Assembly (NCBI RefSeq): GCF_006345805.1
Contig: NW_021832123.1
Coordinates: 62,001-126,000 of the forward strand
Direction: 5' to 3'
Origin: Octopus sinensis
Lineage: Eukaryota
Length of the DNA stretch: 64,000 bases
Shown piece after piece: positions 5,751-56,936 of this stretch; position 1 is the first letter of the stretch, and every line of letters begins with the position of its first letter. The position numbers were made by a program, and so were the translations under genes. A model generated the notes under the pieces. It saw only the letters and a list, made by a program, of their open reading frames with translations, did no database searches and was not told where the DNA came from.

Positions 5751-6087
5751 TTAATTAGCCTGTCTCGCTCTATTCCTACTGGCTTTCATAAAAGTGCGAG
5801 GATGTATTGGAAGGTACCCACAAATTCCTGAACAGTCAGGTAAATGACAGACCAATTATTTCTGAGAGGTGGTCACTGAGGGTGGCCCCTTCCGCCAACC
5901 AAAAGTTGAATCGATTGAGATTAATCGCCACAATTGTCTCGTTGAAGTTATTGGGCAGAGGATCGTAGTAGCCCAAACGTTCCAGTTGTTTTGGTTTGGG
6001 TGATTTGTCCTTCGACTCGACCACGCTAATTGCGAAGAATGGTCTATTCGCACAACCATGTCTAACCAGACGTATTGCACTTGCCAT
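5751..6087 (-). CDS. MRPS16: Mitochondrial ribosomal protein S16
   Basis: IRLVRHGCANRPFFAI..ERLGYYDPLPNNFNETIVAINLNRFNFWLAEGA; a 25-nt intron, then GICGYLPIHPRTFMKASRNRARQAN*. Confidence 0.92.
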
Positions 6088-6131: not shown

Positions 6132-6983
6132 TTATCGGTTATATCCGAAACCAGGACGAATGACGGTTCTCCGGTTCCGTTCACAAGTCATAAACAACTG
6201 AGGGAGGTCATGCATGGGGTGCCACTGTCCTCCCCCCTCTCGTATATCCCCCCATAGGGCACACTCTTCACAAAGTCACGGATATCATTCTCCGGAACCC
6301 AGACTGGCATGTCCAGGTCGAAGCCACACAATCTGCCCAAGTGGGAGTCCGCTGAGCCGGCGTGGGCAAAGAGAAGGAGACAGGGCTGGTCGGTCGTCCT
6401 CGTCCAGTGATCGACCACACTCGAACACCGGTCGTAATACTCTCGGAATGTCTCCTTTGTCGCATTCCGCAGATCGTCCACGGAATACACGGGCTTGTAC
6501 TCCAAATCGATGTTGAATCCCAGATCTGTCAATTCCTGTGGGGAACAAAAGTCTGGGAAGTCGTTTTTCCAGTAATACAGCCACTCGAACGAGCCCGGTT
6601 CCACTTTGATGGGGACACCTCCTGTCCCTCCGTGATAACCCAACAGAAAATTGTGGGCGGTCTCCACACAGCGGAAGGAAGAGGAGGCAAACACTTCCTG
6701 AAACTCGATCTGGTTATCCCTGAAGGCCTCCCCTACGAGTGGAGAGGGGGGAGTGAACCGAGGAGTCTTGCATGGAACTTGCCGAGTTGAGTCAAAGGAG
6801 AGTCATTTTGGTAGGCGGTGATTCCGTTCTTTCTATTTAGGAGACACCTTGGCATGTTCAAGTCAAATGGCTGGCCTGGAATGGAATGACGAGGATACCC
6901 GTGTACTTTGTCATCCAGTCTCTGCCGAAACACATGTCCACTCTCTCCCCATGCCTGATCACAAATATGTCTCGAATAGCCAT
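6132..6983 (-). CDS. Histidine phosphatase of the UBASH3/Sts-1/EPPase type (phosphatase domain only)
   Basis: MAIRDIFVIRHGERVD (RHG motif), DSPLTQLG, SSSFRCVETA, IKVEPGSFEW, LLFAHAGS; two micro-introns. Stop at 6188 as written, or 6132 if a G is missing from the run at 6232-6237. Confidence 0.82.
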
Positions 6984-8000
6984 CACAGTACCACAAATAT
7001 CAATTTAATGTTTTAATTAACATACTTACTTTAGATCGGGTTTTATTACATATACAACAAACCACCCGTGGAAGACCTACAAATATTTTCCCGATAGATG
7101 ATGCGATTGTGAAAAAAGCATCAAAATCCAAAACTAATCTGGTCAACCGACTCAACTGTTCCCGAAGAACCCACAAAAGCTTACATTCAGTCGGTGGGAT
7201 GTGGAGAACATTGGAGAATATGCGTGCTGAACATAAGTTTTAAATGGTCCAGTCGGAAGAATGCCTAATGGCTTGGTTCATAAATGGAACAAGCTTTGCC
7301 GAGTGTGCCCATCGAACTGAGAATGACCGCAGAGTCCAGCTCTGGTTTGAAGAGAAAGTAAATCGACTGAGAGCAGGCGCATTAAACTTAATCACTCTTA
7401 TTATTTCCCCTCTTCTGTACTTTTCTTTGTCACCCTCACCCAACAGACCACACAACAAGGCAGATAACTCGGTGAGAACAAATATACTGACAAATCAAAT
7501 GGATAAATGCAGCCGCAAACATCACTTCACAGCTGCACCGAATAAACTAAATAAACCATATCGTGATATCAAGTCGATTACGCAGTCGCTCCTAAACTGC
7601 AGGTTATCCACCAAACCTAGAAGAAGATCAAAAAAATAAGATTGTAGTTCCCGGACAGTAACGAAAGAGTAAATTGACTCCTCAATGATTAGAACGAATA
7701 AGGAACAGAATGAAACTTCCAAACCATGCCGAATTTATATCAAAGATGCAACATAGTTTTGACATTCTCGAATAAAGTCACAAACTCGCACGGAAATTGG
7801 GGAGAGTATTTCGCGGAATCCAAACACGAATAAACAAAAACTTCAATGGGGAAGGATAAGGAAATGAGAGTTTAATAAGGCTAAAAAACGGAGATAAAGT
7901 GCAGACGACGACTCGACGAATTTCTTAAATAATCCAGTTGTTAATTAAATAATATTTTAATTAAGTAAATTTTATACACGTTTCACTTTGTTTCGTGTTT

Positions 8001-8146
8001 GTACTCCTAATGATGATAATAAAATCTGATGTGTCGACCATGCAATAGTTTATATTTTATTATTAATTACTTTCTTAAATACTATATAATCATATATCCT
8101 GCATTGGTCGATTTGCTGATCTAGATTATGAGAGCTGAAGGAGTAC
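8001..8146 (+). ncRNA. Candidate box C/D snoRNA or scaRNA, intergenic
   Basis: Perfect 8-bp terminal stem GTACTCCT (8001-8008) / AGGAGTAC (8139-8146); box C ATGATGA at 8010-8016; box D CTGA at 8135-8138; internal CTGA at 8026 and 8116; internal 11-bp hairpin TCGACCATGCA (8034-8044) / TGCATTGGTCGA (8100-8111). Confidence 0.68.
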
Positions 8147-8248
8147 TAATGTAATTCCTTTATTTTAGGAGTGGCTTTAAGCAATAGTTAAATCAGGAAG
8201 TTAGTGATAGAGAAAATAAAGTACATGATTAGTTGATAGAAAAAATGA

Positions 8249-10651
8249 TTAGTTGAGAGCGTAGTATTCAACGTCGTCAAAGTCCGCCACCTCGTATCCC
8301 GACAGTCCAAAGCCGGCGAATATTCCTTCTGTCACGTCAGTTGTACCCTCATAAATCAGATGACCTTCAATCCTGGCAGTAATTGTATTATTCTGGAACT
8401 CATATAATAATCAAACGTGTGCACTGAACCTCATCGTTATCCATTCGGGTACGGGCAGTGTGGTGGCGTTAGGAATCCGTGCAATCAAGGACAGGCGTGC
8501 TAAAGGCGAGTCACAATTTGCGTATACCCAAATCGTTGTAGAAAAGTGCTTCGTTTGACTGAGTGTTGTAAAAAAAGAAAAGTCCTCTGGCATTGAAGGA
8601 ATTGAGTCCTCCGTTGATCATTCGCAGCATTACGAACGGCATCACATTCAATTTGGGCAATATTTTCACTCTAACGGAAATCACCGAACTAAGTAGAAAA
8701 AGCATGCCAACTTGAGGGCGGACGGGAACAGAGTGAATGGTGCGTTGCAAGGAACGGGTGTCCAAAATACGGGCAACGCAGGCGCCATTTGACGGTAGAA
8801 ACGATTCCCACTTTCCTCCATCACTTCGAACGACCCGCATTGTTGGGAAAGGTAGGGAGCCTCAGAGTTCACTTCAAGCTGTTCAAAATTCTCAATGAAG
8901 AAGTGAGGGAAGCCGGCGGAGGGCGGAATGCTGGGCAGAGTGATGTCGTTGGTGTCCCTCGTACTAAACGAATACACACAGTCCGGCTCGAATGTAAAAC
9001 TGAATTCTCCGTCCACGATCTGGCTTATACACACAAATCAACCTCCACGTCCGCCATTTTGGCAAATTTGTCGCCATCGTTGGTCAACTTGGTCCTCCGA
9101 ACGTGTAACACCGTATTATTCTTCGAGACTATGAACTTGTCGTTTATTACGGACTTGACTCCCTGAACAAGTAAACCAGCCATGCAACCGTCGTCTCCAC
9201 CAGAATTAAAAAGTCCTCTCGACTAGGACTGGCCAGAGTAACGTAGGACCCAAAGTCGGCAAACCCAGCAGATCTTTCCAAAAACACCCAATCCATATCC
9301 ACGTGATGTGTCACATGAGCTGGGCGGTTAAGTTCGTCAAATCACCAATTTCAAAGAATGGGACCCTGACGGAGAAGTGGTTGCTCCAGGGTTGCGAAGC
9401 GAGGATGATTCCCGTTCCGTAGTAGGGGAGGCCCGGGTTGTAGGACGAGGTGAGGCACCACGCGAGGAATCCCGTCAGAGAGTGTTGGATGTAGTTCCTG
9501 TTGAATCTCTTAGAATATGCATAAAAATGGGACACAGCCACGAATCCGCCGTAGAACTGGTCTTCGGAGGCGATCTGGGGTTTTCCCTGAGAGTTGTAGT
9601 TGTAGTGGTCATCAGGGTAATGGAGTCTGATTGGTAGACAGAAATCAACCCGACGATATCCACCAAATCAGCAAGTGTGGCATCATTCTCCATATCCTGG
9701 TTGATGGTGGAGATTCCGTCTGCTGCGATTATTTTAGTGTTCGGGCAGCATCGGTCGAGATTATCCCGCAGAATCTACTCGGCTCATCCCACAGTCCAAC
9801 CTGCATGTAGTTCTTGTTGTACAGTTTCTCATTCCAAATCTGTGAGTTAGTCCAGGAATAACCCCGATGGAGTCAATCGTCAAGTTGTGGTGTTCCTTCG
9901 CCCCAGTAATCCATTTGGTGGTGTAGTTCGCCAGTTTGTGCGGATGCAAGTACGGGTCTCTCAGCCAGGAGGGGAAGCACCAGGAGAGTCCGCTCAGATG
10001 GAGTTTGTTATTTAACTATAAATGAAGAATAAAGACGACATTTTTGGCTGTAGTCATGATTTTCCACTCGTATCCTCGAAAGTAGTTTTCGTCGTGTTCG
10101 GTGTGCATGTGAGAGGCCTCACTGCCGCCTGGAGATGTGGCACTACTGGCTCACTTGAGGATTCACAGTCGCCCCCAATTTCAACTTTGAGGATTTGCAG
10201 AGATGCTCCGTATTTGGGCTGACCTGATTTAATTAATGAATTACCCGGAAAAGTAATTCCATAATTTGGTCGAAATTGGAATAATTGGTCAAATATTTGG
10301 ATGTCGCCTAAGAATAAGTTGAGGGGAAACTCCGCCGCCGCTGATTGCGCCGATCCCCATGTATTTCGAGGTCTTTGGGTCATCCAGGTCGATGACAGTG
10401 ACCGATTCTGGGATGCCGTTGTTATCCAGGTTCAGCACACGGGGAAATTGGGAGATTTCGTTGTTATCCAAGTCGATGACAGTGACCGATTCCCAGTTTT
10501 CGTTGCTATCCAGGTTGATCACAGTGGGGAATTGGGAGATTTCGTTATTCAGGGCGATCCCACTGAGGGATTGCCAGGTCTCGTGATTATCCGAGTTGAT
10601 CGCAAAAGAGGATACCAAAACTGTGAAGACAAGCATTTGGATTGCTGCCAT
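8249..10651 (-). CDS. GALC: Galactocerebrosidase (glycoside hydrolase family 59)
   Basis: Signal peptide; spliced GIGAISGGGATSK, PKYGASLQILKVEIGGD, HMHTEHDENYFRGYEW, GLSWCFPSWL, IDSIGIWNEK, EAPYLSQQCGSFE and C-terminal FGLSGYEVADFDDV all follow the human GALC order; about ten micro-introns. Confidence 0.93.
10382..10591 (-). repeat. Coding tandem repeat (42-nt / 14-aa subunits, 84-nt higher-order unit) in the GALC N-terminus
   Basis: NNEISQFPTVINLD-SNENWESVTVIDLD-NNEISQFPRVLNLD-NNGIPESVTVIDLD plus a partial upstream copy; DNA repeats such as TCGATGACAGTGACCGATTC occur twice. Confidence 0.9.
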
Positions 10652-10678: not shown

Positions 10679-13600
10679 TATTATTATTATTAGCACTGTC
10701 ATAGGAACATAATGTAATTTAAACTAATTAAGTTCCCACATGTGCCACATATGAGACTATCTTTTCGGTCATAATTTTCCATGATGTGCGGTTGTATGCT
10801 ATACTCCTGAGAGTATCTAGGTCGTCTCCATTTTTCAGTTGTCTTTTAACGCGTTGTAGTTCTTTTGAGATTACAATAGGTAATGTATTTCGTGGGCGTC
10901 CTCGGGACGCAGATCTTTCGTCCTTTGCGTAATATGATTCCATTGCCCAGTTAGCATAAACATCCTGGTCGAGTCTTAGAATGTGGCCCAATAGGCGCCA
11001 ACGTGCTTCGGTAATGTCCACACTGACGGGTCTGCTGTTGCAGATATTGTATAGGTGGGAGTTCTTGATTTTCTTTGGCCAGTTGATGCCAATAAGAATT
11101 CTTAACTGTCTTCTATGGAATGCATCAAGAGATTTTGATTCAGACTCAGATATTCCCCATGTTCCTCCGTTGTACAAAAGTATGGGTTTAATAAAAGCAT
11201 TGTATAATTTGGCACGTAAGGCGTTCCAACCTCGCGGTTTCGTAGCCAAGTGGTCCGCAGTTTGTTAAGTGCAACAGTCGATAGCATCTTTCTCCTCATA
11301 ATGTCTTCACTATCTCCTAAAAGAGTTCCAACTTTTTTCGAGTTTCGCCATTTTTCGTCTGTTCTATTTGCCTCCCGGTTGATTGTTACATATTCGGTTT
11401 TTTCTATGTTCACTTTTAAGAACCATTTTTCCAGTGCCTGAGGAGCAATGTTCAGCAGTTCTTCGAGTGTCGACTTATCATGAGACAAAAAGTCTACATC
11501 GTCGGCATATATCACTTCAGTTATTGAAGTAGTCTTCACTAGTTTTCTCAGATCTCTTAGTGCCGCTTCAAGATAGACAATGAATAGTACAGGTGATATT
11601 GAATCACCTTGGGGCGTTCCAATGCTTGTTTTGAAAGATCTTGATTGTACGGGTCCGATCTTCACCGTTAACTCGGTGTCTATAAGTAGTGCTCGAACCA
11701 TTCTGATCGAGTCACTGTCAAGAATAGTTTTGAGGATCTCCATTAGCTTGTCTCTGCGGATTGTATCAAATGCCCTGCTCATATCAATGCCCAATATTGT
11801 GGTCGCCATTTTAAATTTCTGAGATATGGCACAGATCCATCTATGTCCCCACTACATCTGCAGTTGATCGCCCAGGCCTGAATCCACTTTGGCTAGCCGA
11901 CAGATATTCATTAACAGGGTCCTTAATACGTTCCAGTGTTACGAGCGAGAAGATTTTCCTTATTGTGTTCAAGAGTATGATTGGGCGAATGTTGTTAAGA
12001 GGACCTTGCGGCTTGTTGGGTTTTTGGAGAGGAATTAGCGTTCCTTTCCCAATAGGCGGTATGGTATTTCCATGGAACATCTCGTTCAGGAGATTTGTGA
12101 TTATAGTTGAGATCTCCATTGGGGAGTACTTTATCAATTCACCGTTGATGTTGTCTGGACCGCCGCACACGGTTGTTTTTTAATTTTTTTATAGCCTTCA
12201 AAACTTCAAGGTGTTATTTTGTTGTTTAGATAACGTTCTTCACCCTCATCGAGAGCATCGGCCCTGCCATTGAATAGTATTTCGAAGTGGTCGGCGATTG
12301 TATTTACCATTTCGATTGGGTTTCCAATTGTTTTCCCATGTTCATCGTGCACAACCAGTTTTGTTTTCTGTGTCGTCGGCGTAGTAGTCTGATGGCTGCG
12401 TACATTTGCGCACCATCCTTTAAGTCTTCAACTTCTGATATTCGAGAGTTTAATAAAGCTTTCACGTATTTAAGATTTTCCTTCTTGATTGTTCTCGATA
12501 TTTTCCTACGTTCTCTTTTGAGTTTTTCCTTTGCCTCCTTGTCGTTGGTGTTTTCAATTTTCAGTTGGATGGCTTTTTGTTTGTTGCCATTTCGGCAACA
12601 TTTGGATTCAATGGGTTTGAGTGGTTTCTGAGTGCAGTCGTTCCAATGGTTTCCGTTGCAGCTTTGTGAATAAGTTTTTCTAATATATCCCAGCTTTTGT
12701 TTGGGTCTTTTACCGTTTCTGTTACTTTTAGGTTTTCGATGATTGCCTGGGAGTATTTTTCCTTGGTAACATCTGATGTAATCAGTTTTTCCACTGAGTA
12801 TCTAATTCGGTTTGATTCATTTTCTTTTGAAAGAGGCGATCCAAAAATTCTTTTCAGTCTCAATCGTGCCACAATGACTTTGTGATCGCTCAGTGTAAGT
12901 GCCCCGCCATATGACCTGGCATCCAGCAATCGATGTTTTTCTTCTTGTCTACAGATGATATAATCGATTTGATTATAGATGTTGACGTACTCCCCATTTT
13001 TGTTTCTTCTAGTCCCGGTCCACGTGGTTTTATGACGTGCCGCATGAGGAAAGACCGTATTGCATAGCAGTAGCTTGAATATGCTGCAGAAGTTCACAAG
13101 CATTTCGCCTGGTGCATTTCTTATCCCCCGTCCATGTCTGCCCATGAACACTTCTTCACCACGGCCTTTGCCTGCCTTAGCATTCCAATCACCGGCAATT
13201 AGTATAAGGAAGGATGTTTTTACTCGTGTAGGTCTTTGATAGCATGTGATAGAAAGAGTCTAGTTCATCCGCGTTCTTCTTCAGTCTTCCACTTTGTGGG
13301 GCGTAGACATTTATAATGCTGATTATTCGATCCGTGTTGGTCAAAGTTTTTTGTCTCAGTTGTAGTACACATATGCGGTCGTTCACACGGTAGTATTTGT
13401 GAATTGAATTCCAAAAGGTCTTATGAATGCCAAACCCCTGCCCATAATGACGTGATTCTGATGGAAGGAGAATGATTCGATACTCGTTGTGTATCTCATC
13501 TAGCCCGCCTTTGACCTTCGTTTCTTGAAAGCATCCGATAGTTGCACCATATGCATTCAGATCCCGGCATAGGATTTTTCGCTTGGATAGGTCAGATAGT

Positions 13601-13695
13601 CCTCTGACATTGAATGATAGCAAAGTAAAATCTCTTTGTAGCCTCATATGTGATTAAGACTTTGTGCAATAGAGTTGCGTCACTAACTCAACCAA
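10679..13695 (-). mobile_element. Near full-length RTE-group non-LTR retrotransposon (single APE+RT ORF, frameshifted)
   Basis: APE motifs SFNVRGL, GCFQETK, NVYAP, NQIDYI; RT motifs QSGFRPGRST, DMSRAFDT, GTPQGDSISP, YADD; (TAA)n 3' tail; 11-bp TSD TATTGTTTTAT at 10668-10678 and 13696-13706. Confidence 0.93.
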
Positions 13696-21670: not shown

Positions 21671-23723
21671 CTAACAGAGAACAGACTGAGCAGCCTCGTA
21701 TATGCACTCTGCAGAGATTCCATACTTGTCAAGCAAATCGAGGGAAGGGCCACTGTGGGGAATCTCCCGCACGCACAAATGCCTCATCTGAATTCCTGCC
21801 ACTCCGACAAGGGCAGAGGCCACCGCCTCCCCGAGTCCCCCTGCGAATTAACAGGCTGGCCTACCCTCAGGATAATGATCCTCGGCAACCACCAGACGTC
21901 CGTTGGTGGCAGAAACAGCCGACTTGATGGCAGCGACGTCGAGTGGTTTGACAGTAAACACGTCAATCACTCGAAGGGGCAATTCCGGGTGAGTTTGCCC
22001 GAGTTTCATTGCCTCCACGAGCGTGACCCCTGCCGCAACCACCGTGCACACGTCGTCACCACTGCTTCTCACCACCCGAGCCTGCCCCACACTGAAGGAG
22101 GCCGCGTTGTCGTAGATGACGGGGAAATTAGGACGGGATGTGCGAATAAAGCAAATGCCCGGAGTGTTGGCAGCCAATTCGACAGCCCTTTCGGTGGACA
22201 CGGCATCTCTTGGATAAAAGACGGTGGAATTGGGAATGCTTCTGAACATGGCGATATCCTCGAGGGCCATTTGGGACGCCCCATCCTCCCCTATCGACAC
22301 CCCCGCGTGGGATCCCACAAAATTAGCATTGGACATGGATATTGCCCCCATCCGTATCTGATCAAAAGCACGAGTCCAGAATGCAGCGAATGTGCTGGCA
22401 TACACCACAGTCCGTGCTCTCGTGGCCGCCCCAATGGCCACCCCCGCCATGTTTTGCTCGGCGATGAAGCACTCCACAAATCGGCCATCTCCCCCAAACG
22501 AGTCCTACAAATTGAATATTTCAGAACACGTTGAATTTGGAGGCAAAGGTGGAATTCTTGGTGTCCCCGTCCAACCCCAGCACTGACGGGTTCCCCTTCC
22601 CCATCTTCAGTAGTCCTTCCCCGTAGGCACTCCGAGTGGCCACCTATCCGTCGAGGACTGTCTCTACCATTTGCCCTGTCGAATAATCCGGCGGGGAGGA
22701 CAGTCGGTACTCTCCTGATGGCACTTCCTCCACCAACACGGAAGGTTTGGGGACCAACTCGGACACGGGAAATGTTTGGTGGGACAAATTAGACTTCAAA
22801 TATTGGAGGACACCCTCCGCCTTATCCCCAAGCACTTTTCCATGCCATCCCCCACTGTCCTCAATCCCCGGAAAATCCTTTCCTTTCTTAGTCATGGCAA
22901 TGATGGCTGTGGGCTGGTCGAGGCAACTCCTGGCTGTCTCGAATGCAGAAATGAGTGCAGGAATGTCATGTCCGTCCACCACAAGTGAATTAAATCTACC
23001 AATTAAGGCCAAACACACCCAAAGGCGGCACAGCGGAGTCGATATGTGTCGAACTGGTGGCCAAGCATGGTCTCCTGGGACTGTCCGTAGACATTGCAGT
23101 CGATGACCACGACGAGGTTGGCCAGTCGGTAGTGGGCAGCCAAGGCCATGGCCTCCCAGACGGACCCCTCGGCGGACTCCCCATCACCCATCACACAGTA
23201 AACGCGATATCTGAGTGTGAGGGAGTGGAATACGGAGCTTTGTCGATGTATTTGGCCACATAAGCCATTCCTACGGCACTGCTGAGTCCCTGCCCCAACG
23301 ACCCGGTGGCCACGTCGACGAAGGGAATCCTCTGCTGGTTAGACAGGCCTGACATGCCGGAGTTGGGTGCCCTTCCAGACGACAGTCCAATTTACGCAGT
23401 TGGAGGAGTTCAGATTGCTCCACTTGGCCGAGTTCTGCCCAGACAGCGTAGAGGATTGGGGCAGCGTGTCCCTGGAGGTTAGGGAAGAGTGCACTTTGGA
23501 GAGAATGAATCGGTCGTTTGAAGGATTGAGCCAGTTGTGGGGAAATAACGCATTTCTTTGAAGAAGAGGACACTCATTATTTCAGCAATCGAACTGCAAG
23601 ATGTTGGGTGTCTATAGGGTGAGTTATCTCCTGTCATCACCCAGAATTAGCCGCATTTGTTGACAGAATTGAGCTAATACGAAGTCTTGTGGCGAGTGCA
23701 CGTAATTGTTCAATTGTGGTCAT
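21671..23723 (-). CDS. TKT: Transketolase
   Basis: [88 protein letters not shown]; eight introns of 23-29 nt; one apparent 1-nt frameshift near 23540. Confidence 0.97.
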
Positions 23724-27154: not shown

Positions 27155-28328
27155 TTATGAATTAGAAAACACAGTTGGATGCAAACTAAGCAAGTAGCTA
27201 ACAAGTTGAATGGCAGTTTCCGCGGCGACACATGTATCCATGTAACAAGTCAAGATTTGACTGATAATGAAATTATAAACTCCGTCAGAAACAAACGTCT
27301 TCCAGTCGCTGCACCACTTAATGGTCTGCTTAATGAATTCCTCAGTTAACTCCGAATCCCAAATATGCACACTGCGCAACAAAAATTGTATATCATTGAT
27401 ATTTTGTCGAGGAACGATGTAAGTGATTTTAATTAAAACGGGGAATAAGTTATACACGAATTAATAAAGAGCCTGGAGGTCAGCTCAAAGTCGCCGCACT
27501 GCGTATCGAGTGGCAGTTTCCGCGGAGCAATGTCGGCAAGAAGGCGAGTCGCAGACCTGCCGACAATTCCAGATGTTTCGAAGGCGAGGGGGACAAACTC
27601 GTAAGAGTCCGAAATATTTCCATACTTCGACCTCTTAGCCTCCTCAGCCTGAGCACTGGCGGAACCCGGGTTAGTGATGGACTTGAGTAACACCGACGCG
27701 GAGAACGAGTCAACACAAGTTGCGTCCCAAATCAGGGACTTGCCTTCCCTGAAAGGGAAGGTAGTCATCCCGTCAGGAGGCTTTCCATCACTCCGGCAGA
27801 GACCGACTGGCTCTAGAGTGGAGGGGAAACCTGCCGACTCTAGAGCCCTTTTCACGACGTCATTGAGGTGAGTGTGGCGAGGAATTCTACCAGCACTCTT
27901 CTTGCACGAGAGGGCGTGCAAACCGTTCGGAGAGATCGTGGACCCGCACCGGCATGGGTGGGGCTGACAGATGTCCAGGCCCAAGCGTAAGCAGACACCA
28001 ATCCGTAAGGATTCGTCATCCAAGAGATGTCCCGTACTAGGGGTAGGGAGTGCATTGAGCCAGTCTCCCGTATGCGGCTGGCAAGCGCAGTTGAGAGATG
28101 CCAGTTGGACTTGGTCCAACTTTGACCGGAGTTTGCACAGAGTCTCTGAGCAAAAGACTTCGTCATAATTAAGACAACGATGTAAGTAACATGAAATATT
28201 GCCAAATTCAAAAGATTTGGAGTGCAGATTGTATGGCTACTAATATTTATTTCTAGTTATAAATTTATTGGTAATTATTATAATAAATAATAAAATACCT
28301 TCGTGTTGGTCTTGTTGTTGTTATCCAT
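27155..28328 (-). pseudogene. Unknown host coding region interrupted by the CRE-like insertion
   Basis: The frame NLAIFHVTYIV on the right flank continues as TYIVPRQNINDIQFLL.. on the left flank through the 12-bp TSD. A possible first exon MDNNNKTNTK has its ATG at 28328, but I could not splice it in frame. Confidence 0.35.
27425..28175 (-). mobile_element. 5'-truncated CRE-clade non-LTR retrotransposon (zinc knuckle + RLE region)
   Basis: GDWLNALP..LRLG..CRCG..HALSC..RHTHLND..LEP.GL...DGKPPDG...GKSLIWDATCVD..FVPLAFETSG..RGN; 12-bp TSD AACGATGTAAGT at 27413-27424 and 28176-28187. Confidence 0.85.
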
Positions 28329-40720: not shown

Positions 40721-41384
40721 TCATCTTAATCTTTTAAAATAACTATTATTTGAAATTAAATCTTCAATAGTAAAGATTTGTTGATGATAAAAAGATTCTA
40801 ATTTTCGCTTTTTCGTCCTTTGATTTGTATCAGAATCTTTTTTCAGCAAAACATTATTTCCAATTTCTTTCAATGTTTTTGAAGAATTTCTTTCCAGTCT
40901 TTCAAGATATTTGTCATTTATGATAGTTTGATTTTCATGTTCTTCAATTAATTCATCATCATTAAAATAAGAAATTTTATATTCTCTTGTTCGGAAAAAG
41001 TCATAAATGGTGACATATTTATAGAAGAATGAATTGAAATATTGTAGTGATATACAATTTCTAAAACATCTACCCATTTTTTCTATTTGTCTGTAAGTTC
41101 TTTTGCATCCATCTGAAGATGGTTTTATTGCAACGCTCCACTTGTCCCTGTGATTCTGGATGTCTTGATAAGATATTTATAGGAATCATTTATATCTGAA
41201 TAAAACGAAAGATCGACTAAATCAACTTGATAGCTAAAAATAAAATATTGAATGAACCTTTCTCGAATTCTTTGGCTACTATGTTGACTAGTGGATATTA
41301 AGTGCTGACTTGGCTGACATTTGTGGCATGATGATATTACATCCCTAATTGTGATTATTATAGGCACTTTAGTGATGCCATGGA
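40721..41384 (-). mobile_element. Integrase-type (Ginger/KRBA2-like) DNA element, downstream half, degenerate
   Basis: HGITK..IRDVISSCHKCQ..YQVDLVDLS..NDSYKYL: CxxC of the integrase zinc-binding motif plus the start of the DDE core. Confidence 0.65.
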
Positions 41385-44340
41385 TCATGACAAAGCTTGT
41401 GCAGCACAGGAAACAATAAGAGTAGTTAGTTTATTCCATTTCCCGCGATCTTGGGCGACGTCCCGTAGTGCATCGATTCTTTACCAGCCCTCTTTAGGTC
41501 TCTATCCAGCGTACCCGGGAGAGTATTTCTTGGTCGTCCACGGAAACGATGGCTCCCAGCTTCTAAATAGTCCTCCATAGCAACGTTTGCCGGTTCATCC
41601 AAATCCATCCTTAGAATGTGTCCAAACAGCCTCCATCTGCATTCGGTAATTTCGATTGGTTTGCTTGATGTTCTGGCATAAACTGTTATGCTACTCAGCC
41701 TTGAATGCCACTTGGAGGTTAGAGTACGTCGAAGGTGATCTCTATGGAAAGAGTCTAGTCCCCAAGTTCCGGCGTTATATAGGAGTATTGGCTTCACTAG
41801 TGAATTGTATAGTCGTATCCGTGTTTTTGTGCTGAGTCCTTTGCGTTTTAGCCAATTTTCCTTTAAGCTGCGTAGTGCACTGTTTGCATGTGTTTTTCGC
41901 ATAATCACGTCTTGTTCGTCTCCCAATAGAGATCCGAGTTTCTTTACTTTTCTCCAATGTTCGTCCAGCTTAGACTTCTGTCTTGCTAGTTCAGTAAATT
42001 TTGTTTTCTCCACGTTTACATTGAGGAACCACTCAGCAAGTCTATTTGGCATCACCTCCAATAGGCTTTCCAGAACGTCCCTGTCGGAAGAAATAAAATC
42101 CACGTCATCCGCGTATGCCACCACATTGATCTTTCCTTCATAGTATGGTTTTAGTTCTCTCAATGCAGTTTCCAGATATATCACAAATAGTATAGGAGAT
42201 AACGGATCCCCTTGAGGTGTTCCAGATGTTGTTTCAAATGGTTTAGAGCAGTGGTTCTCAACGGTGGGCGATTCGCCCCCTAGGGGCGATTTTTTCTGCC
42301 AGGGGGGCGATGGCTGATTGCTAATATTTGAAAAATTAAAATCTTATGTTAGAAGTCGATAATCTTTGAAAAAATAAAGATATATAATCGAGTCTAATAA
42401 TATTTATTAATAATATGATATTTTTATTATATTTTATTTAAATTTCTAAGCGTGATTTCTAGTTATCATTATGGGTCGTGTTTAAAAAAAAGTCAGAATG
42501 TATAAAGATGAATATATTTCTCTTGGATTTATTAAAGATCCTCAAGATCCTAATAAACCACTTTGTCTTCAATGTGGTACAATTTTTTCGAATGAGGCAA
42601 TGAAACCGTCTCGTTTGATTGAACATTTAAAACGAAAACATCATAATTCAATTGGAAAAAAGCCAGACTTTTTTCTAGAATTAAAAAAGAATTTTGAAAA
42701 TAAAAACACCTTACCGGCAATCTTTAATAAAAATATATCTCAAAATGTCTCTGGTATCTTATTCATATAAAGTTGCAGAGATAATCGCAAAAACTGGTTG
42801 CATTATTATTTTAATTTATAGGTAATGCCCATTCGATTGCAAAAAATGTCATCCGTCCTTGTTTAAATTTATTTATAAACGATATCTTACAAAAAGATTC
42901 TTCAAATATTATGAAGACTATTCCATTAAGCAACGACACTATACGAAGAAGAATTGATGAAATTTCTAATGAAATTGAACAATCTTTAATTTTATTTCTC
43001 AGAGAACGCAAGTTTTCAGTCCAACTTGTTTCCAAAATCTTTAGTCACGGATACTACAGGATTGTCAATATTCAAAATGTTTGAATCTTATTTATTCTTA
43101 AATGATATTCCATTTGAACATATTTTATCGTGCGCAACTGATGGCGCAATGGCTATGGTTGGAAAATATCGTGGTTTTTTAGCTTTTCTAAAACAAAAAT
43201 CTCCAATGTCCACTTCAATTCATTGTATTTTACATCGGCATCATTTAATTGCAAAAAAATTATCTGAAGAATTGAATGCATCAATGCAAATTGTTATCAA
43301 AGTTATCAATAAAATTAAAAGAAACAGCAAGTACGATCGTATTTTTCGTGAATACTGCACTAATCAAAATGAAGATTATGTTAGGTTACTTTTACATACC
43401 GAAGTAAGATGGTTATCCAAGGGAAATTGTCTTGAAAGATTGGGATATTATTTGATGCAATTGTTGATTTTTTAAGATTACAAGAAGAATTTAATTTTTT
43501 AATTCCTGCAAAATTCATAGAAAAAATATTTTTTATTTAAATTGGATTTTTAAAAAATTAAATGAAGTTTCATTGGCTTTACAAGGAGATTATGTTAATT
43601 TAATTGATTGCAAACGAATTATAAATACATTCATTGAAAAAATTCAATTTTACAAATTTAATTTAAGTAATAGAAAATTTGGAAAATTCGATTTTTATGA
43701 CCACACTTTTGATGACAACGATCTGAAAATTTATGAATTTCATTTAGAATCTTTGGAACAAGATTTGAAAAAAAGATTTGAAGATTTAATTAATTTAAAC
43801 TTTTCTGATTGGATGATTAATCCTTGGTTGCCCATTCATTATGATTCTGATGATGAATGTCAAGAAGAATAATAGAACTAAAAAACGACGAAGAACTGAA
43901 AATAAAATTTAAAAATGAAAACCTGACACAATTCTGGGGAGAAAAATCTATAAAAATTAAATTTCCGAAATTATGGGAAAAAATGATGCCAATAATATTA
44001 TGTTTTCCTACGTCATACTGCGTAGAGAGAGGATTCAGCACTCTGAATAGTATGATCGGAAAAAAAGAAACAAACTAAATATAGAAGAAAGAGGCGACAT
44101 TAGAATTACACTTACGAAAAGAAGTACAAATTTTGAAAAACTTGTCAATCTTCATCAACCACAAGGATCTCATTAAAACTCTTATTTTTTAAATAAAAAT
44201 TTTTACTAATGAAATAAGGGGGCGATATAAAAATTGGAGGGGCGAAAAAAATTCCAAGGGGGCGATACAAAAATAAAGGTTGAGAACCACTGGTTTAGAG
44301 CACTTGTCTCGTACTCTGACCGATAGATAGGTTTCTGATT
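41385..44340 (-). mobile_element. 5'-truncated RTE-group LINE (about 0.9 kb) carrying the hAT insertion
   Basis: KPFETTSGTPQGDPLSP..YLETALREL..YADDVDF..KKLGSLLG; the frame is continuous across the hAT TSD; possible 5-bp TSD ATGGA at 41380-41384 and 44341-44345. Confidence 0.85.
42249..44292 (+). mobile_element. hAT transposon, Buster/ZBED8-like subfamily, non-autonomous (deleted and frameshifted)
   Basis: 14-bp TIRs CAGTGGTTCTCAAC; 8-bp TSD GTTTAGAG at 42241-42248 and 44293-44300; BED finger (PLCLQCG..MKPSRLIEHLKRKH), TDGAMAM, HCILHR, EVRWLSKG, SYCVERGFS; subterminal GGGGCGAT repeats. Confidence 0.95.
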
Positions 44341-55197: not shown

Positions 55198-56936
55198 GAC
55201 TTTAAGAAAGGGCTTTTCAGGAATGCTTTTACTCAAGTGAGAAAATCACATACTCCTTTTACTGCTCGGAAAGGAAAAGTCAACGACAGGGATGGCAGAG
55301 AGTTATTCAGCGGTCACAGCGTCCGAAACAGATGGAGGGAGTTCGTGGAAGAACTTTATTCTCCAGAATACAAAACTTCAGCATCTCGTCATGGAACGTT
55401 TACTATCTTTCCGAACCCCGAAGATGATATCCGAGAAAGTGATGTTACATGGGCCGTAAATGAATTGCCTAGCAACAAGGCGCCTGGGCCGGACAATATT
55501 TCAAGCGAGATGCTTAAGGCCATTCCTTTATCAGCAATCACAACTCTCTGCAAGAATATTTGGAAAACTGGTGTTTGGCCTTCTGATTGGAAGAAATCAA
55601 TATTTATTATGTTGCCTAAAAAGGGCGACAGAAAAGTCTGCTCGAATTACCGCACAATTGCTCTCATATCTCATGTTAGCAAAATACTCCTGACGTTAAT
55701 AAAACAACGTCTATCTCCAATCTCAGAAAAGATTCTTTCAAATTGCCAAGCCGGTTTTAGACGTGGTCGTGGTACGAGAGATCACATCTCCAGCCTTCGT
55801 TGGATTTTGGAAAAATCCCGTGAATCCCAGAAGCCTGTTTTCATGTGTTTCATTGACTATCGCAAGGCTTTTGATTGCGTATCTCACGTGAAACTTTGGT
55901 CCGTCCTAGAAGAATTTGGAATTCCTCATCATCTCATATCGATAATAAAATCTCTTTATACTGACCAAGAGGGTTTTGTGCGGACCCCTTATGGAGACAC
56001 AGACTGTTTCGGTATTGGGAGGGGCGTCCGACAAGGCTGTATTCTATCCCCGCTACTGTTTAATATTTACACGGAGAAAGTCATGGAGGAGTTAAATTGC
56101 GAAAATGACATCGGAATCAAGATTGGTGGCCTAAACATAAATAATCTCCGTTATGCAGACAATACTACTTTGCTGTCTGAAACAGAGGATGGCTTGAGGC
56201 AATTAATTACGAGAGTCAAAGACAACAGTGCCTCTTTTGGCCTATTCCTAAATGTGAAAAAAACCAAAATAATGACAACTTCACTGTCTGGAAAAATTAG
56301 TGTCATCGTCGACGACGAAGAAATAGAATGTGTTGAAAGTTATATTTTTCTTGGAAGTCTGATAACCATAGATGGTGGTTGTGTTTCAGAAATTAATAGA
56401 CGGATGGCTATGTGCAAGAGTACGATGATAAAACTGAATCGGATCTGGAGTAGCAAGGATGTTTCTCTAAAGACAAAGATAAGTCTAGTCAACGCGATTG
56501 TGTTTCCCGTTTTTCTCTATGGTTGTGAATCTTGGACACTGTCCAAAGCTCAAGCAAAAGAGTGCACTCACTGGAATTATGGTGCTGGCGCAAACTTTTG
56601 AACATAAATTGGTACGAAAAAGTGTCAAATGTCGTTGTTCTCGAAAAGATTAAACCTACACTGTCGCTTGTGGCGAAAGTTTGGAAGCAACAATTATCAT
56701 ATCTGGGGCACGTGCTTCGGGGGAATGGTATAGGAAAAGGAATCCTGCTGTCTTCGTTCGCTGAAAAAAGGAAGCAGGGTAGACCGAAACTAAACTGGAC
56801 ATCTGAAGTAGTGAAACTTACCGGATATCTTTTGTCGGAAATAGCAGTGCTGGTGGGGGATAGAGCTTCGTGGAGGGACTTGTCTTACAGAATCGCCAAT
56901 GGCCGAAATCGGCTGAATATGGCTTAACTTTAACTT
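55198..56936 (+). mobile_element. 5'-truncated RTE-BovB-like LINE
   Basis: NKAPGPD, NYRTIAL, QAGFRRGRGT, DYRKAFD, GVRQGCILSP, LRYADN, YIFLGS; (AACTTT)n-like tail; 12-bp TSD TAATTTACAAAT at 55186-55197 and 56937-56948. Confidence 0.93.

Follow-up and report, generated by a model that had tools for sequence, protein, structure and literature searches.

We examined a 64-kb stretch of DNA (the window) from contig VCDQ01000770.1 (GCA_006345805.1, window at approximately 62001–126000), which is filed under Octopus sinensis. Positions 8001–8146 on the plus strand are, judged by their sequence, a genuine box C/D guide RNA gene, and very probably this organism's counterpart of the SNORD97/SCARNA97 small nucleolar RNAs (snoRNAs), most likely expressed as an independent RNA polymerase II (Pol II) unit. 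Human SNORD97 and SCARNA97 direct the 2'-O-methylation of exactly C34 of elongator tRNA-Met (Vitali and Kiss, 2019, PMC6601510), and invertebrates (insects), Ciona and plants have been described as having a single homologue each, in which C34 is selected by a D-box guide called 'phylogenetically invariant' (PMC6601510). The family is therefore a known one, its function being established in human cells and predicted for invertebrates; what is new here is one more member.

The guide element and its predicted tRNA-Met target

The element carries its four boxes in the order C-D'-C'-D between the halves of a perfect terminal stem (Table 1). The 8-bp stem, box C with its 3-nt bulge, box D abutting the stem and two internal CTGA motifs had all been listed in a first-pass annotation of this DNA, and all can be read directly from the sequence. 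The bulge consists of A8009, A8010 and U8011, ahead of G8012 and A8013, and the tandem G.A pairs of a kink-turn are possible between G8012 and A8138 and between A8013 and G8137. D' and C' are juxtaposed by an internal hairpin, which had been described as an 11-bp helix closing a 55-nt AT-rich loop. The pairing and the loop stand, whereas the helix is not uninterrupted: a bulged T8104 splits the 11 bp into 7 + 4, and in the minimum free energy (MFE) fold G8033.U8112 adds a twelfth pair. The loop (8045–8099) is made up of 20 A, 6 C, 1 G and 28 T, that is, 36% A, 2% G and 62% pyrimidine. A degenerate C' box is usual in box C/D guide RNAs. The spacer UAAUAAAAU was considered as a D' guide and rejected, being short, weak, entirely A/U and unconserved in sequence.

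Table 1. Features of the element and its surroundings (window coordinates), followed by the loci of the metagenomic homologues (coordinates of their own contigs).
Feature	Position	Strand	Basis or remark
AT-rich upstream tract, candidate promoter region	7921–8000	+	composition, GC 0.19
TATA-like element TTTATACA, candidate	7971–7978	+	-30 to -23 from first terminal-stem base
5' terminal-stem half GTACTCCT	8001–8008	+	read from sequence; pairs perfectly with AGGAGTAC, 8 bp
Box C, AUGAUGA (ATGATGA in DNA)	8010–8016	+	TGAT.A invariant in alignment A1
A/U spacer UAAUAAAAU, box C to box D', 9 nt	8017–8025	+	unconserved spacers of 3–11 nt in homologues
Box D', CUGA	8026–8029	+	CUGA likewise there in L111, L082, L048, L088, L099, L041 and the ceN56 consensus
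Internal hairpin bridging D' and C'	8034–8111	+	arms TCGACCATGCA (8034–8044) and TGCATTGGTCGA (8100–8111)
Box C' (cUGAUcu), degenerate	8116–8122	+	homologues RUGAU(N)(N), 2–4 nt before guide; UGAG in human SNORD97, UGAU in ceN56
D-box antisense element AGAUUAUGAGA	8123–8133	+	exact complement of elongator tRNA-Met(CAU) nt 31–41 (UCUCAUAAUCU)
Box D, CUGA	8135–8138	+	directly adjoins 3' stem half
3' terminal-stem half AGGAGTAC	8139–8146	+	read from sequence
AATAAA of converging GALC (GH59) mRNA	8159–8164	-	GALC stop codon TAA at 8251–8249
AATAAA, 69 nt beyond 3' end of element	8215–8220	+	speculative precursor 3'-end signal
Homologue L111	182–309	+	
Homologue L082	1246–1374	-	
Homologue L048	257–358	+	
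Homologue L054	223–375	+	
Homologue L088	9637–9828	+	
Homologue L099	2437–2628	-	
Homologue L041	547–653	-	
Homologue L042	8679–8849	-	L112 identical

The real guide, overlooked in the first-pass annotation, is by its sequence the stretch of 11 nt preceding box D; it is antisense to elongator tRNA-Met and brings C34 into the methylation register. The complementarity covers the entire anticodon loop and three stem positions of the tRNA; written as DNA, the guide AGATTATGAGA has the reverse complement TCTCATAATCT, a sequence conserved without change in the tRNA-Met(CAT) of organisms from human to Arabidopsis (Suppl. Fig. S4, PMC6601510). The guide ends 1 nt before box D, and counting back with G8134 as position 1 makes G8130 position 5, facing C34. 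This is the arrangement of the SNORD97/SCARNA97 family, in which the D-box element is antisense to tRNA-Met(CAU) and C34 lies opposite the fifth nucleotide. The consensus sequences of SNORD97 and ceN56 carry AGAUUAUGAGA unchanged, and so do all eight homologues among the matches listed. The predicted energy of the duplex between guide and tRNA-Met is -14 to -15.6 kcal/mol. In the window, AGATTATGAGA is found once, even when one mismatch is allowed; about 0.066 exact copies would be expected per window, and at a single given position this 11-mer would occur with a probability of about 4.8e-7.

In the mechanism we propose, the terminal stem, box C and box D would form a kink-turn, and the kink-turn would recruit 15.5K/Snu13, Nop56, Nop58 and the methyltransferase fibrillarin, while the internal hairpin, in bringing D' and C' together, would create a second, internal protein-binding motif. 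The element before box D would then pair with tRNA-Met nt 31–41, in the anticodon loop and on the 3' side of its stem, and the rule of the fifth nucleotide upstream of box D would place C34 in the active site of the fibrillarin on the C'/D side, yielding 2'-O-methylated C34 (Cm34). We infer from the sequence that the RNA is expressed and bound by the core proteins, that the organism's own tRNA-Met retains the conserved anticodon arm, and that its C34 is methylated. In human cells, Cm34 shields tRNA-Met from angiogenin cleavage.

The first-pass annotation had proposed a different target. It took the element for a single-domain C/D RNA resembling the small Cajal body-specific RNAs (scaRNAs) and the CTGA at 8116 for a D' box, with the preceding GGTCGATTTG (GGUCGAUUUG in the RNA) as a guide for 2'-O-methylation of the large subunit (LSU) ribosomal RNA (rRNA) motif GCAAAUCGAUC. 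The 10-nt complementarity, with its one G.U pair, is arithmetically right, and UGAUGU at 8027–8032 together with CUGA at 8116–8119 can be read as a second C/D-like pair. The motif itself also seems real, since yeast 25S rRNA presumably contains GUGCAAAUCGAUCGUC. The architecture of the RNA nevertheless makes this target highly improbable. The order C-D'-C'-D would leave a C' box without space past 8119; the CTGA lies downstream of the hairpin and just 3 nt before the D-box guide, where the homologues have RUGAU, which is the position of box C'; and the stretch taken for a guide forms the 3' side of the 11-bp hairpin and has a different sequence in every homologue listed. Where an rRNA guide should be an unpaired and conserved stretch of at least 10 nt preceding D or D' in the correct order, GGUCGAUUUG is a paired and unconserved hairpin arm. 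Under the +5 rule its target would be the U of AAAUCG, in GCAAAUCG, which is not known to be a conserved 2'-O-methylation site. By a rough hand estimate, the chance that a 10-mer matches somewhere in approximately 5.5 kb of rRNA with at most one G.U pair is about 0.05 before alternative guides are counted; a match of this kind is too easily had by chance to override what the structure says against it.

The analogy to scaRNAs had been drawn from the internal hairpin, which merely bridges D' and C', as it does in all of the non-vertebrate homologues listed; its role is an ordinary structural one and is not evidence for a scaRNA. The Cajal-body signals described for C/D scaRNAs are a G.U/U.G wobble stem or, in SCARNA97, a long pyrimidine-rich tract (PMC6601510). 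Neither a wobble stem nor a long purine-poor, pyrimidine-rich tract was seen in the element, whose internal stem contains no more than one G.U pair and whose loop is AT-rich with more than a third A, although invertebrate signals may differ from those described. A scaRNA would also be expected to carry an antisense element to a Pol II small nuclear RNA, and the one well-formed guide of this element is already accounted for by tRNA-Met.

Homologues and probable membership in the SNORD97/SCARNA97 family

At gathering thresholds, Rfam gave no match in the whole window, in agreement with the earlier description of the element as an unannotated box C/D RNA. A permissive Rfam scan of 7700–8450 gave exactly two matches, both full-length and on the plus strand: SNORD97 (RF01291; 24.9 bits, E 0.066 in the 751-nt search) and ceN56 (RF01643; 18.4 bits). 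What anchors the two alignments is the string before box D, which reads AGAUUAUGAGA-G-CUGA in the window, AGAUUAUGAGA-U-AUGA in SNORD97 and GAUUAUGAGA-G-AUGA in ceN56.

We scanned metagenomes for further members with the pattern TGAT-N(1-4)-AGATTATGAGA-NN-TGA, which was present at no fewer than 120 loci, and then kept those that had both TGAT[GT]A upstream and a terminal stem. At least eight convincing homologues, unannotated genes of the SNORD97 type on eukaryotic contigs, were left after filtering (Table 1). About 108 of the 120 loci listed were set aside because an upstream C box with stem was absent; we presume these to be chance matches, mostly on what we take to be prokaryotic contigs. 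Three others (L091, L072 and L008) were discarded as weak. The homologues have a common layout of C, spacer, D', internal stem, C', guide and D. Several of these features were part of neither search nor filter, namely the A-rich spacer of 3–11 nt after box C, the CUGA D' box in most homologues, and the internal stem, which begins a few nucleotides past D' and stops a few nucleotides before C'. Every homologue listed folds such a stem between D' and C'. The conservation of C' is to be read with the caveat that TGAT belonged to the search pattern.

In the alignment of nine sequences (the window and the eight homologues), pairing of the terminal stem is complete (100%), 8/8 pairs have changed on both sides, and the covariation score of the stem is 0.90, compared with 0.25 in shuffles and at most 0.20 with slid partners. 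When the window was left out and a covariance model (R1) was made from the eight homologues, it aligned end to end to 8004–8143 with 40.2 bits (E 1.7e-6), the next-best match in the window scoring 13.8 bits. The similarity to the family thus extends beyond the guide, in layout, in model score and in the covariation of the stem.

Several points weigh against the assignment. The Rfam scores lie well under the gathering thresholds (24.9 against 45 bits for SNORD97, 18.4 against 60 for ceN56), and the SNORD97 E-value becomes 5.6 when the whole window is searched. The homologues were fished with a pattern derived from the window (the TGAT of C', the guide and the TGA of box D), and a C box and a stem were then required of them; because of this preselection, the R1 score and the complete pairing are partly built in and overstate independence. 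At U8122, just 5' of the guide, an extended duplex would need A42 or a G.U wobble, and most homologues have C there. A tRNA scan of the 64-kb window found no tRNA gene, which places the organism's own tRNA-Met outside this comparison, and protein searches with a GALC exon and MRPS16 for a related genome or an orthologous locus found no homologues. Two other ORFs of the window, looked up as exact proteins, had no record.

With regard to the Rfam scores, the 45 bits of RF01291 are a curation threshold and not a biological feature. L054 (34.4 bits) and L041 (28.9 bits), which match SNORD97 and/or ceN56, do not reach it either, and all eight listed homologues score under the gathering threshold. 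The RF01291 model thus appears to be tuned to vertebrate sequences. With regard to the preselection, independent support comes from the 5' layout that the sequences have in common, from the D'-hairpin-C' module and from the match to the family as published.

Instead of a guide RNA gene, the element might be a chance constellation of motifs, a pseudogene that has decayed, the remnant of a transposon with 8-bp inverted ends, or a 3' untranslated region element of GALC on the other strand: the Rfam scores are sub-threshold, the minus strand also folds well (MFE z-score -3.5, with -2.4 on the plus strand), and the GALC poly(A) signal is 13 nt away. We regard such an origin as scarcely credible. 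In a scan of the window for RTGATGA...CTGA with a flanking perfect stem, this was the only candidate on either strand with a stem of more than 4 bp, and among 200 dinucleotide-preserving shuffled windows, stems of at least 7 bp occurred at 0.04 per window, and none (0/200) contained a stem of 8 bp or more. An antisense 11-mer to tRNA-Met in the correct register has a probability of approximately 5e-7. The element retains its four boxes, its two stems and its guide in intact form and occurs once in the window, and the homologues match its layout end to end; the good fold of the minus strand is a trivial result of the same helices.

Other candidates arose in the course of these searches. An identity as a repeat or miniature inverted-repeat transposable element was rejected, a second copy being absent from the window. 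A second scan candidate at 40962–40846 (minus strand) was rejected because its stem has 4 bp, as expected by chance (0.98 per window), and so was a SNOR75-like match at 43184–43257 (minus strand), which has an E-value of 7.7, lacks box D and lies within a plus-strand ORF (open reading frame).

We count the element as a member of the family formed by SNORD97, SCARNA97 and ceN56 because every sequence feature tested for was found, bar the curated Rfam score. Vertebrate SNORD97 (RF01291) is a box C/D RNA of about 142 nt with the same guide and the same nucleotide opposite C34, a similar A-rich stretch after box C, a CC(C/U)...(A/G)GG terminal stem and a full-length alignment to the window. It differs in lying in an intron of EIF4G2, in its box C (UGAUUA) and box D (AUGA), and in its pyrimidine-rich, unstructured interior, in place of which the window has the D'-hairpin-C' module. 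Human SCARNA97 (SNORD133) shares guide and target and acts jointly with SNORD97 on Cm34; it measures 216 nt, is encoded within a LARP4 intron and owes its Cajal-body specificity to a 93-nt pyrimidine-rich tract, compared with which the loop in the window is much shorter.

Caenorhabditis ceN56 (RF01643), whose consensus aligned to window positions 8004–8143, has the same order of box C, about 9 nt, CUGA D' box, internal stem, UGAU C' box, guide GAUUAUGAGA-G and box D. It differs in box C (UGAUUA), box D (AUGA), a 4-bp terminal stem and the sequence of the internal stem, and is kept by Rfam as a separate small RNA family with no target named. By sequence, ceN56 looks like the nematode homologue of SNORD97 and appears to belong to the same family as SNORD97 and SCARNA97. 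The two Rfam families probably belong together, since ceN56 has the same guide and the SNORD97 model misses the non-vertebrate homologues listed.

Likened by description, the element also resembles the non-vertebrate SNORD97/SCARNA97 homologue, with one gene per genome and an invariant D guide (Vitali and Kiss, 2019, Suppl. Fig. S3C). Archaeal box C/D small ribonucleoproteins acting on C34 of tRNA-Met (Joardar et al., 2011, cited in PMC6601510) are, as far as that description goes, alike in chemistry, nucleotide and guide logic, and different in their short RNAs (approximately 50–70 nt), K-loop C'/D' and L7Ae/Nop5/fibrillarin proteins.

Some features of the metagenomic homologues deserve separate mention. 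L088 and L099 are 192 nt long and have pyrimidine-rich interiors resembling the vertebrate forms. Approximately 20 nt from the SNORD97-type gene of L042 lies a second C/D snoRNA-like sequence (8868–8946, minus strand) with weak matches to SNORD83/snoZ17 (26–28 bits), which suggests a snoRNA cluster in that organism. The string GTCGACCA(A)TG is common to the hairpin arm of the window (8033–8042) and the matching 5' arm of L041 and is in no other listed homologue; it could be residual homology to a closer relative or chance. On both strands of L082, 959–1050 form a near-palindromic hairpin with sub-threshold matches to many unrelated miRNA families (35–55 bits), most likely a generic long inverted repeat and not a miRNA.

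Genomic context and mode of expression

The AT-rich tract noted upstream of the element in the first-pass annotation is borne out by a GC content of 0.188 in 7921–8000, against 0.40 in 7801–7920. Two homologues that lie in AT-rich DNA, L111 and L082, have TATATA at a distance comparable to that of the TATA-like element in the window. No ORF of at least 50 aa is present on either strand in 7723–8410 (the next starts at 8411), no Pfam-supported plus-strand gene was found upstream or nearby, and the element is intergenic as earlier described, with no protein-coding host gene visible on its strand. Its neighbours are all on the minus strand: MRPS16 (5836–6087), a histidine-phosphatase gene (approximately 6188–7000) and GALC. 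The convergence of the element on GALC was also correctly seen, the minus-strand ORFs carrying a Glyco_hydro_59 domain (Pfam E 3.6e-10).

The GALC poly(A) signal at 8164–8159 (minus strand) predicts cleavage of the mRNA within or beside the 3' terminal stem of the snoRNA (window 8129–8164). The two units would therefore converge to approximately 0–20 nt and may overlap.

The mode of expression is the least certain step of our explanation. We lean towards independent transcription by Pol II, because the element stands alone on its strand between minus-strand genes and because introns of 24–25 nt are too short to hold it. Transcription would start about 30 nt past the TATA-like element, and the precursor would be trimmed back to the terminal stem. 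Transcription by RNA polymerase III was set aside by reasoning, given the T4 runs inside the RNA (8055–8058). The intron lengths come from the transketolase gene (21677–22832, minus strand), in which three GT..AG introns measure 24, 25 and 24 nt, in a window that is gene-dense; the tiny introns claimed by the first-pass annotation are therefore present, its figure of 23 nt coming close.

Most animal snoRNAs are processed from introns, and the same RNA with the same target might be released from an intron of approximately 204 nt in a non-coding host, or from read-through. Against an independent unit, splice-like GTAAAT at 7965 and TTTTAG at 8163–8168 flank the RNA and span 204 nt. Five of the eight listed homologues (L088, L099, L041, L054 and L042) lie in intronic-looking contexts, and in Dicyema japonicum the mean intron length, 38 bp, lies above the mode, which implies that there are some longer introns (PMC6736024). 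Such hexamers are, however, expected by chance in DNA of 19–26% GC; what would be the upstream exon is AT-rich, lacks an ORF and is interrupted by stop codons in every frame; the snoRNA would end just 22 nt from the 3' splice site; and a TATA-like box stands at -30, in a window whose measured introns are all far shorter. The copy in the window shares its module order and co-varying terminal stem with the metagenomic homologues and, unlike most of those listed, does not look intronic. We therefore judge an intronic or read-through source unlikely.

If the element is indeed an independent Pol II unit, the shrinkage of introns to approximately 24–25 nt suggests a wider change, since introns of this size cannot carry snoRNAs. 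The snoRNA genes of dicyemids, from which this contig probably derives (see below), may have moved wholesale to TATA-driven Pol II units, a reversion of an animal lineage to the style of yeast and plants, with this guide as the first documented example. A move to independent units had been suggested in the first-pass annotation, and we offer it tentatively, and with some doubt, as a reasonable generalization from one gene.

Source of the contig and implications

Although filed under Octopus sinensis, the contig is probably DNA of a dicyemid parasite, as indicated by the introns of 24–25 nt, the gene density and the habitat of Dicyema japonicum. The transketolase ORF, whose gene has these introns, is on record for this contig only. 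Among animals, introns this short have been reported only in dicyemids and myxobolid myxozoans (PMC13644364), and D. japonicum inhabits the renal sac of O. sinensis (PMC6736024). Four long ORFs (10728–13647, 41426–42184 and 27433–28119 on the minus strand and 55237–56601 on the plus strand) resemble, by eye, reverse transcriptase/endonuclease of the long interspersed nuclear element (LINE) type. They would fit D. japonicum, for which a high LINE content is reported (PMC6736024). That 246 kb of contig probably come from a renal parasite matters to users of the O. sinensis assembly.

In spot checks of the dicyemid literature, which do not amount to a survey, snoRNAs were not mentioned. The dicyemid genome is among the most reduced of animals, with approximately 5,000 genes. 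In human cells, snoRNA-guided Cm34 of tRNA-Met is dispensable for growth in culture.

The interest of the element rests on its corrected target, on a likely stand-alone gene amid introns of 24–25 nt, and on a Cm34 guide kept in an extremely reduced animal. A speculative reading as an rRNA guide or scaRNA gives way to a specific predicted function, Cm34 of elongator tRNA-Met, and the SNORD97/SCARNA97 family would be extended to a highly reduced spiralian parasite. The gene is also a concrete example on which to ask how snoRNA expression works where introns are far too short to serve as hosts. If these assignments are true, the survival of the guide in so reduced a genome would argue for strong selection on snoRNA-guided Cm34 of tRNA-Met.

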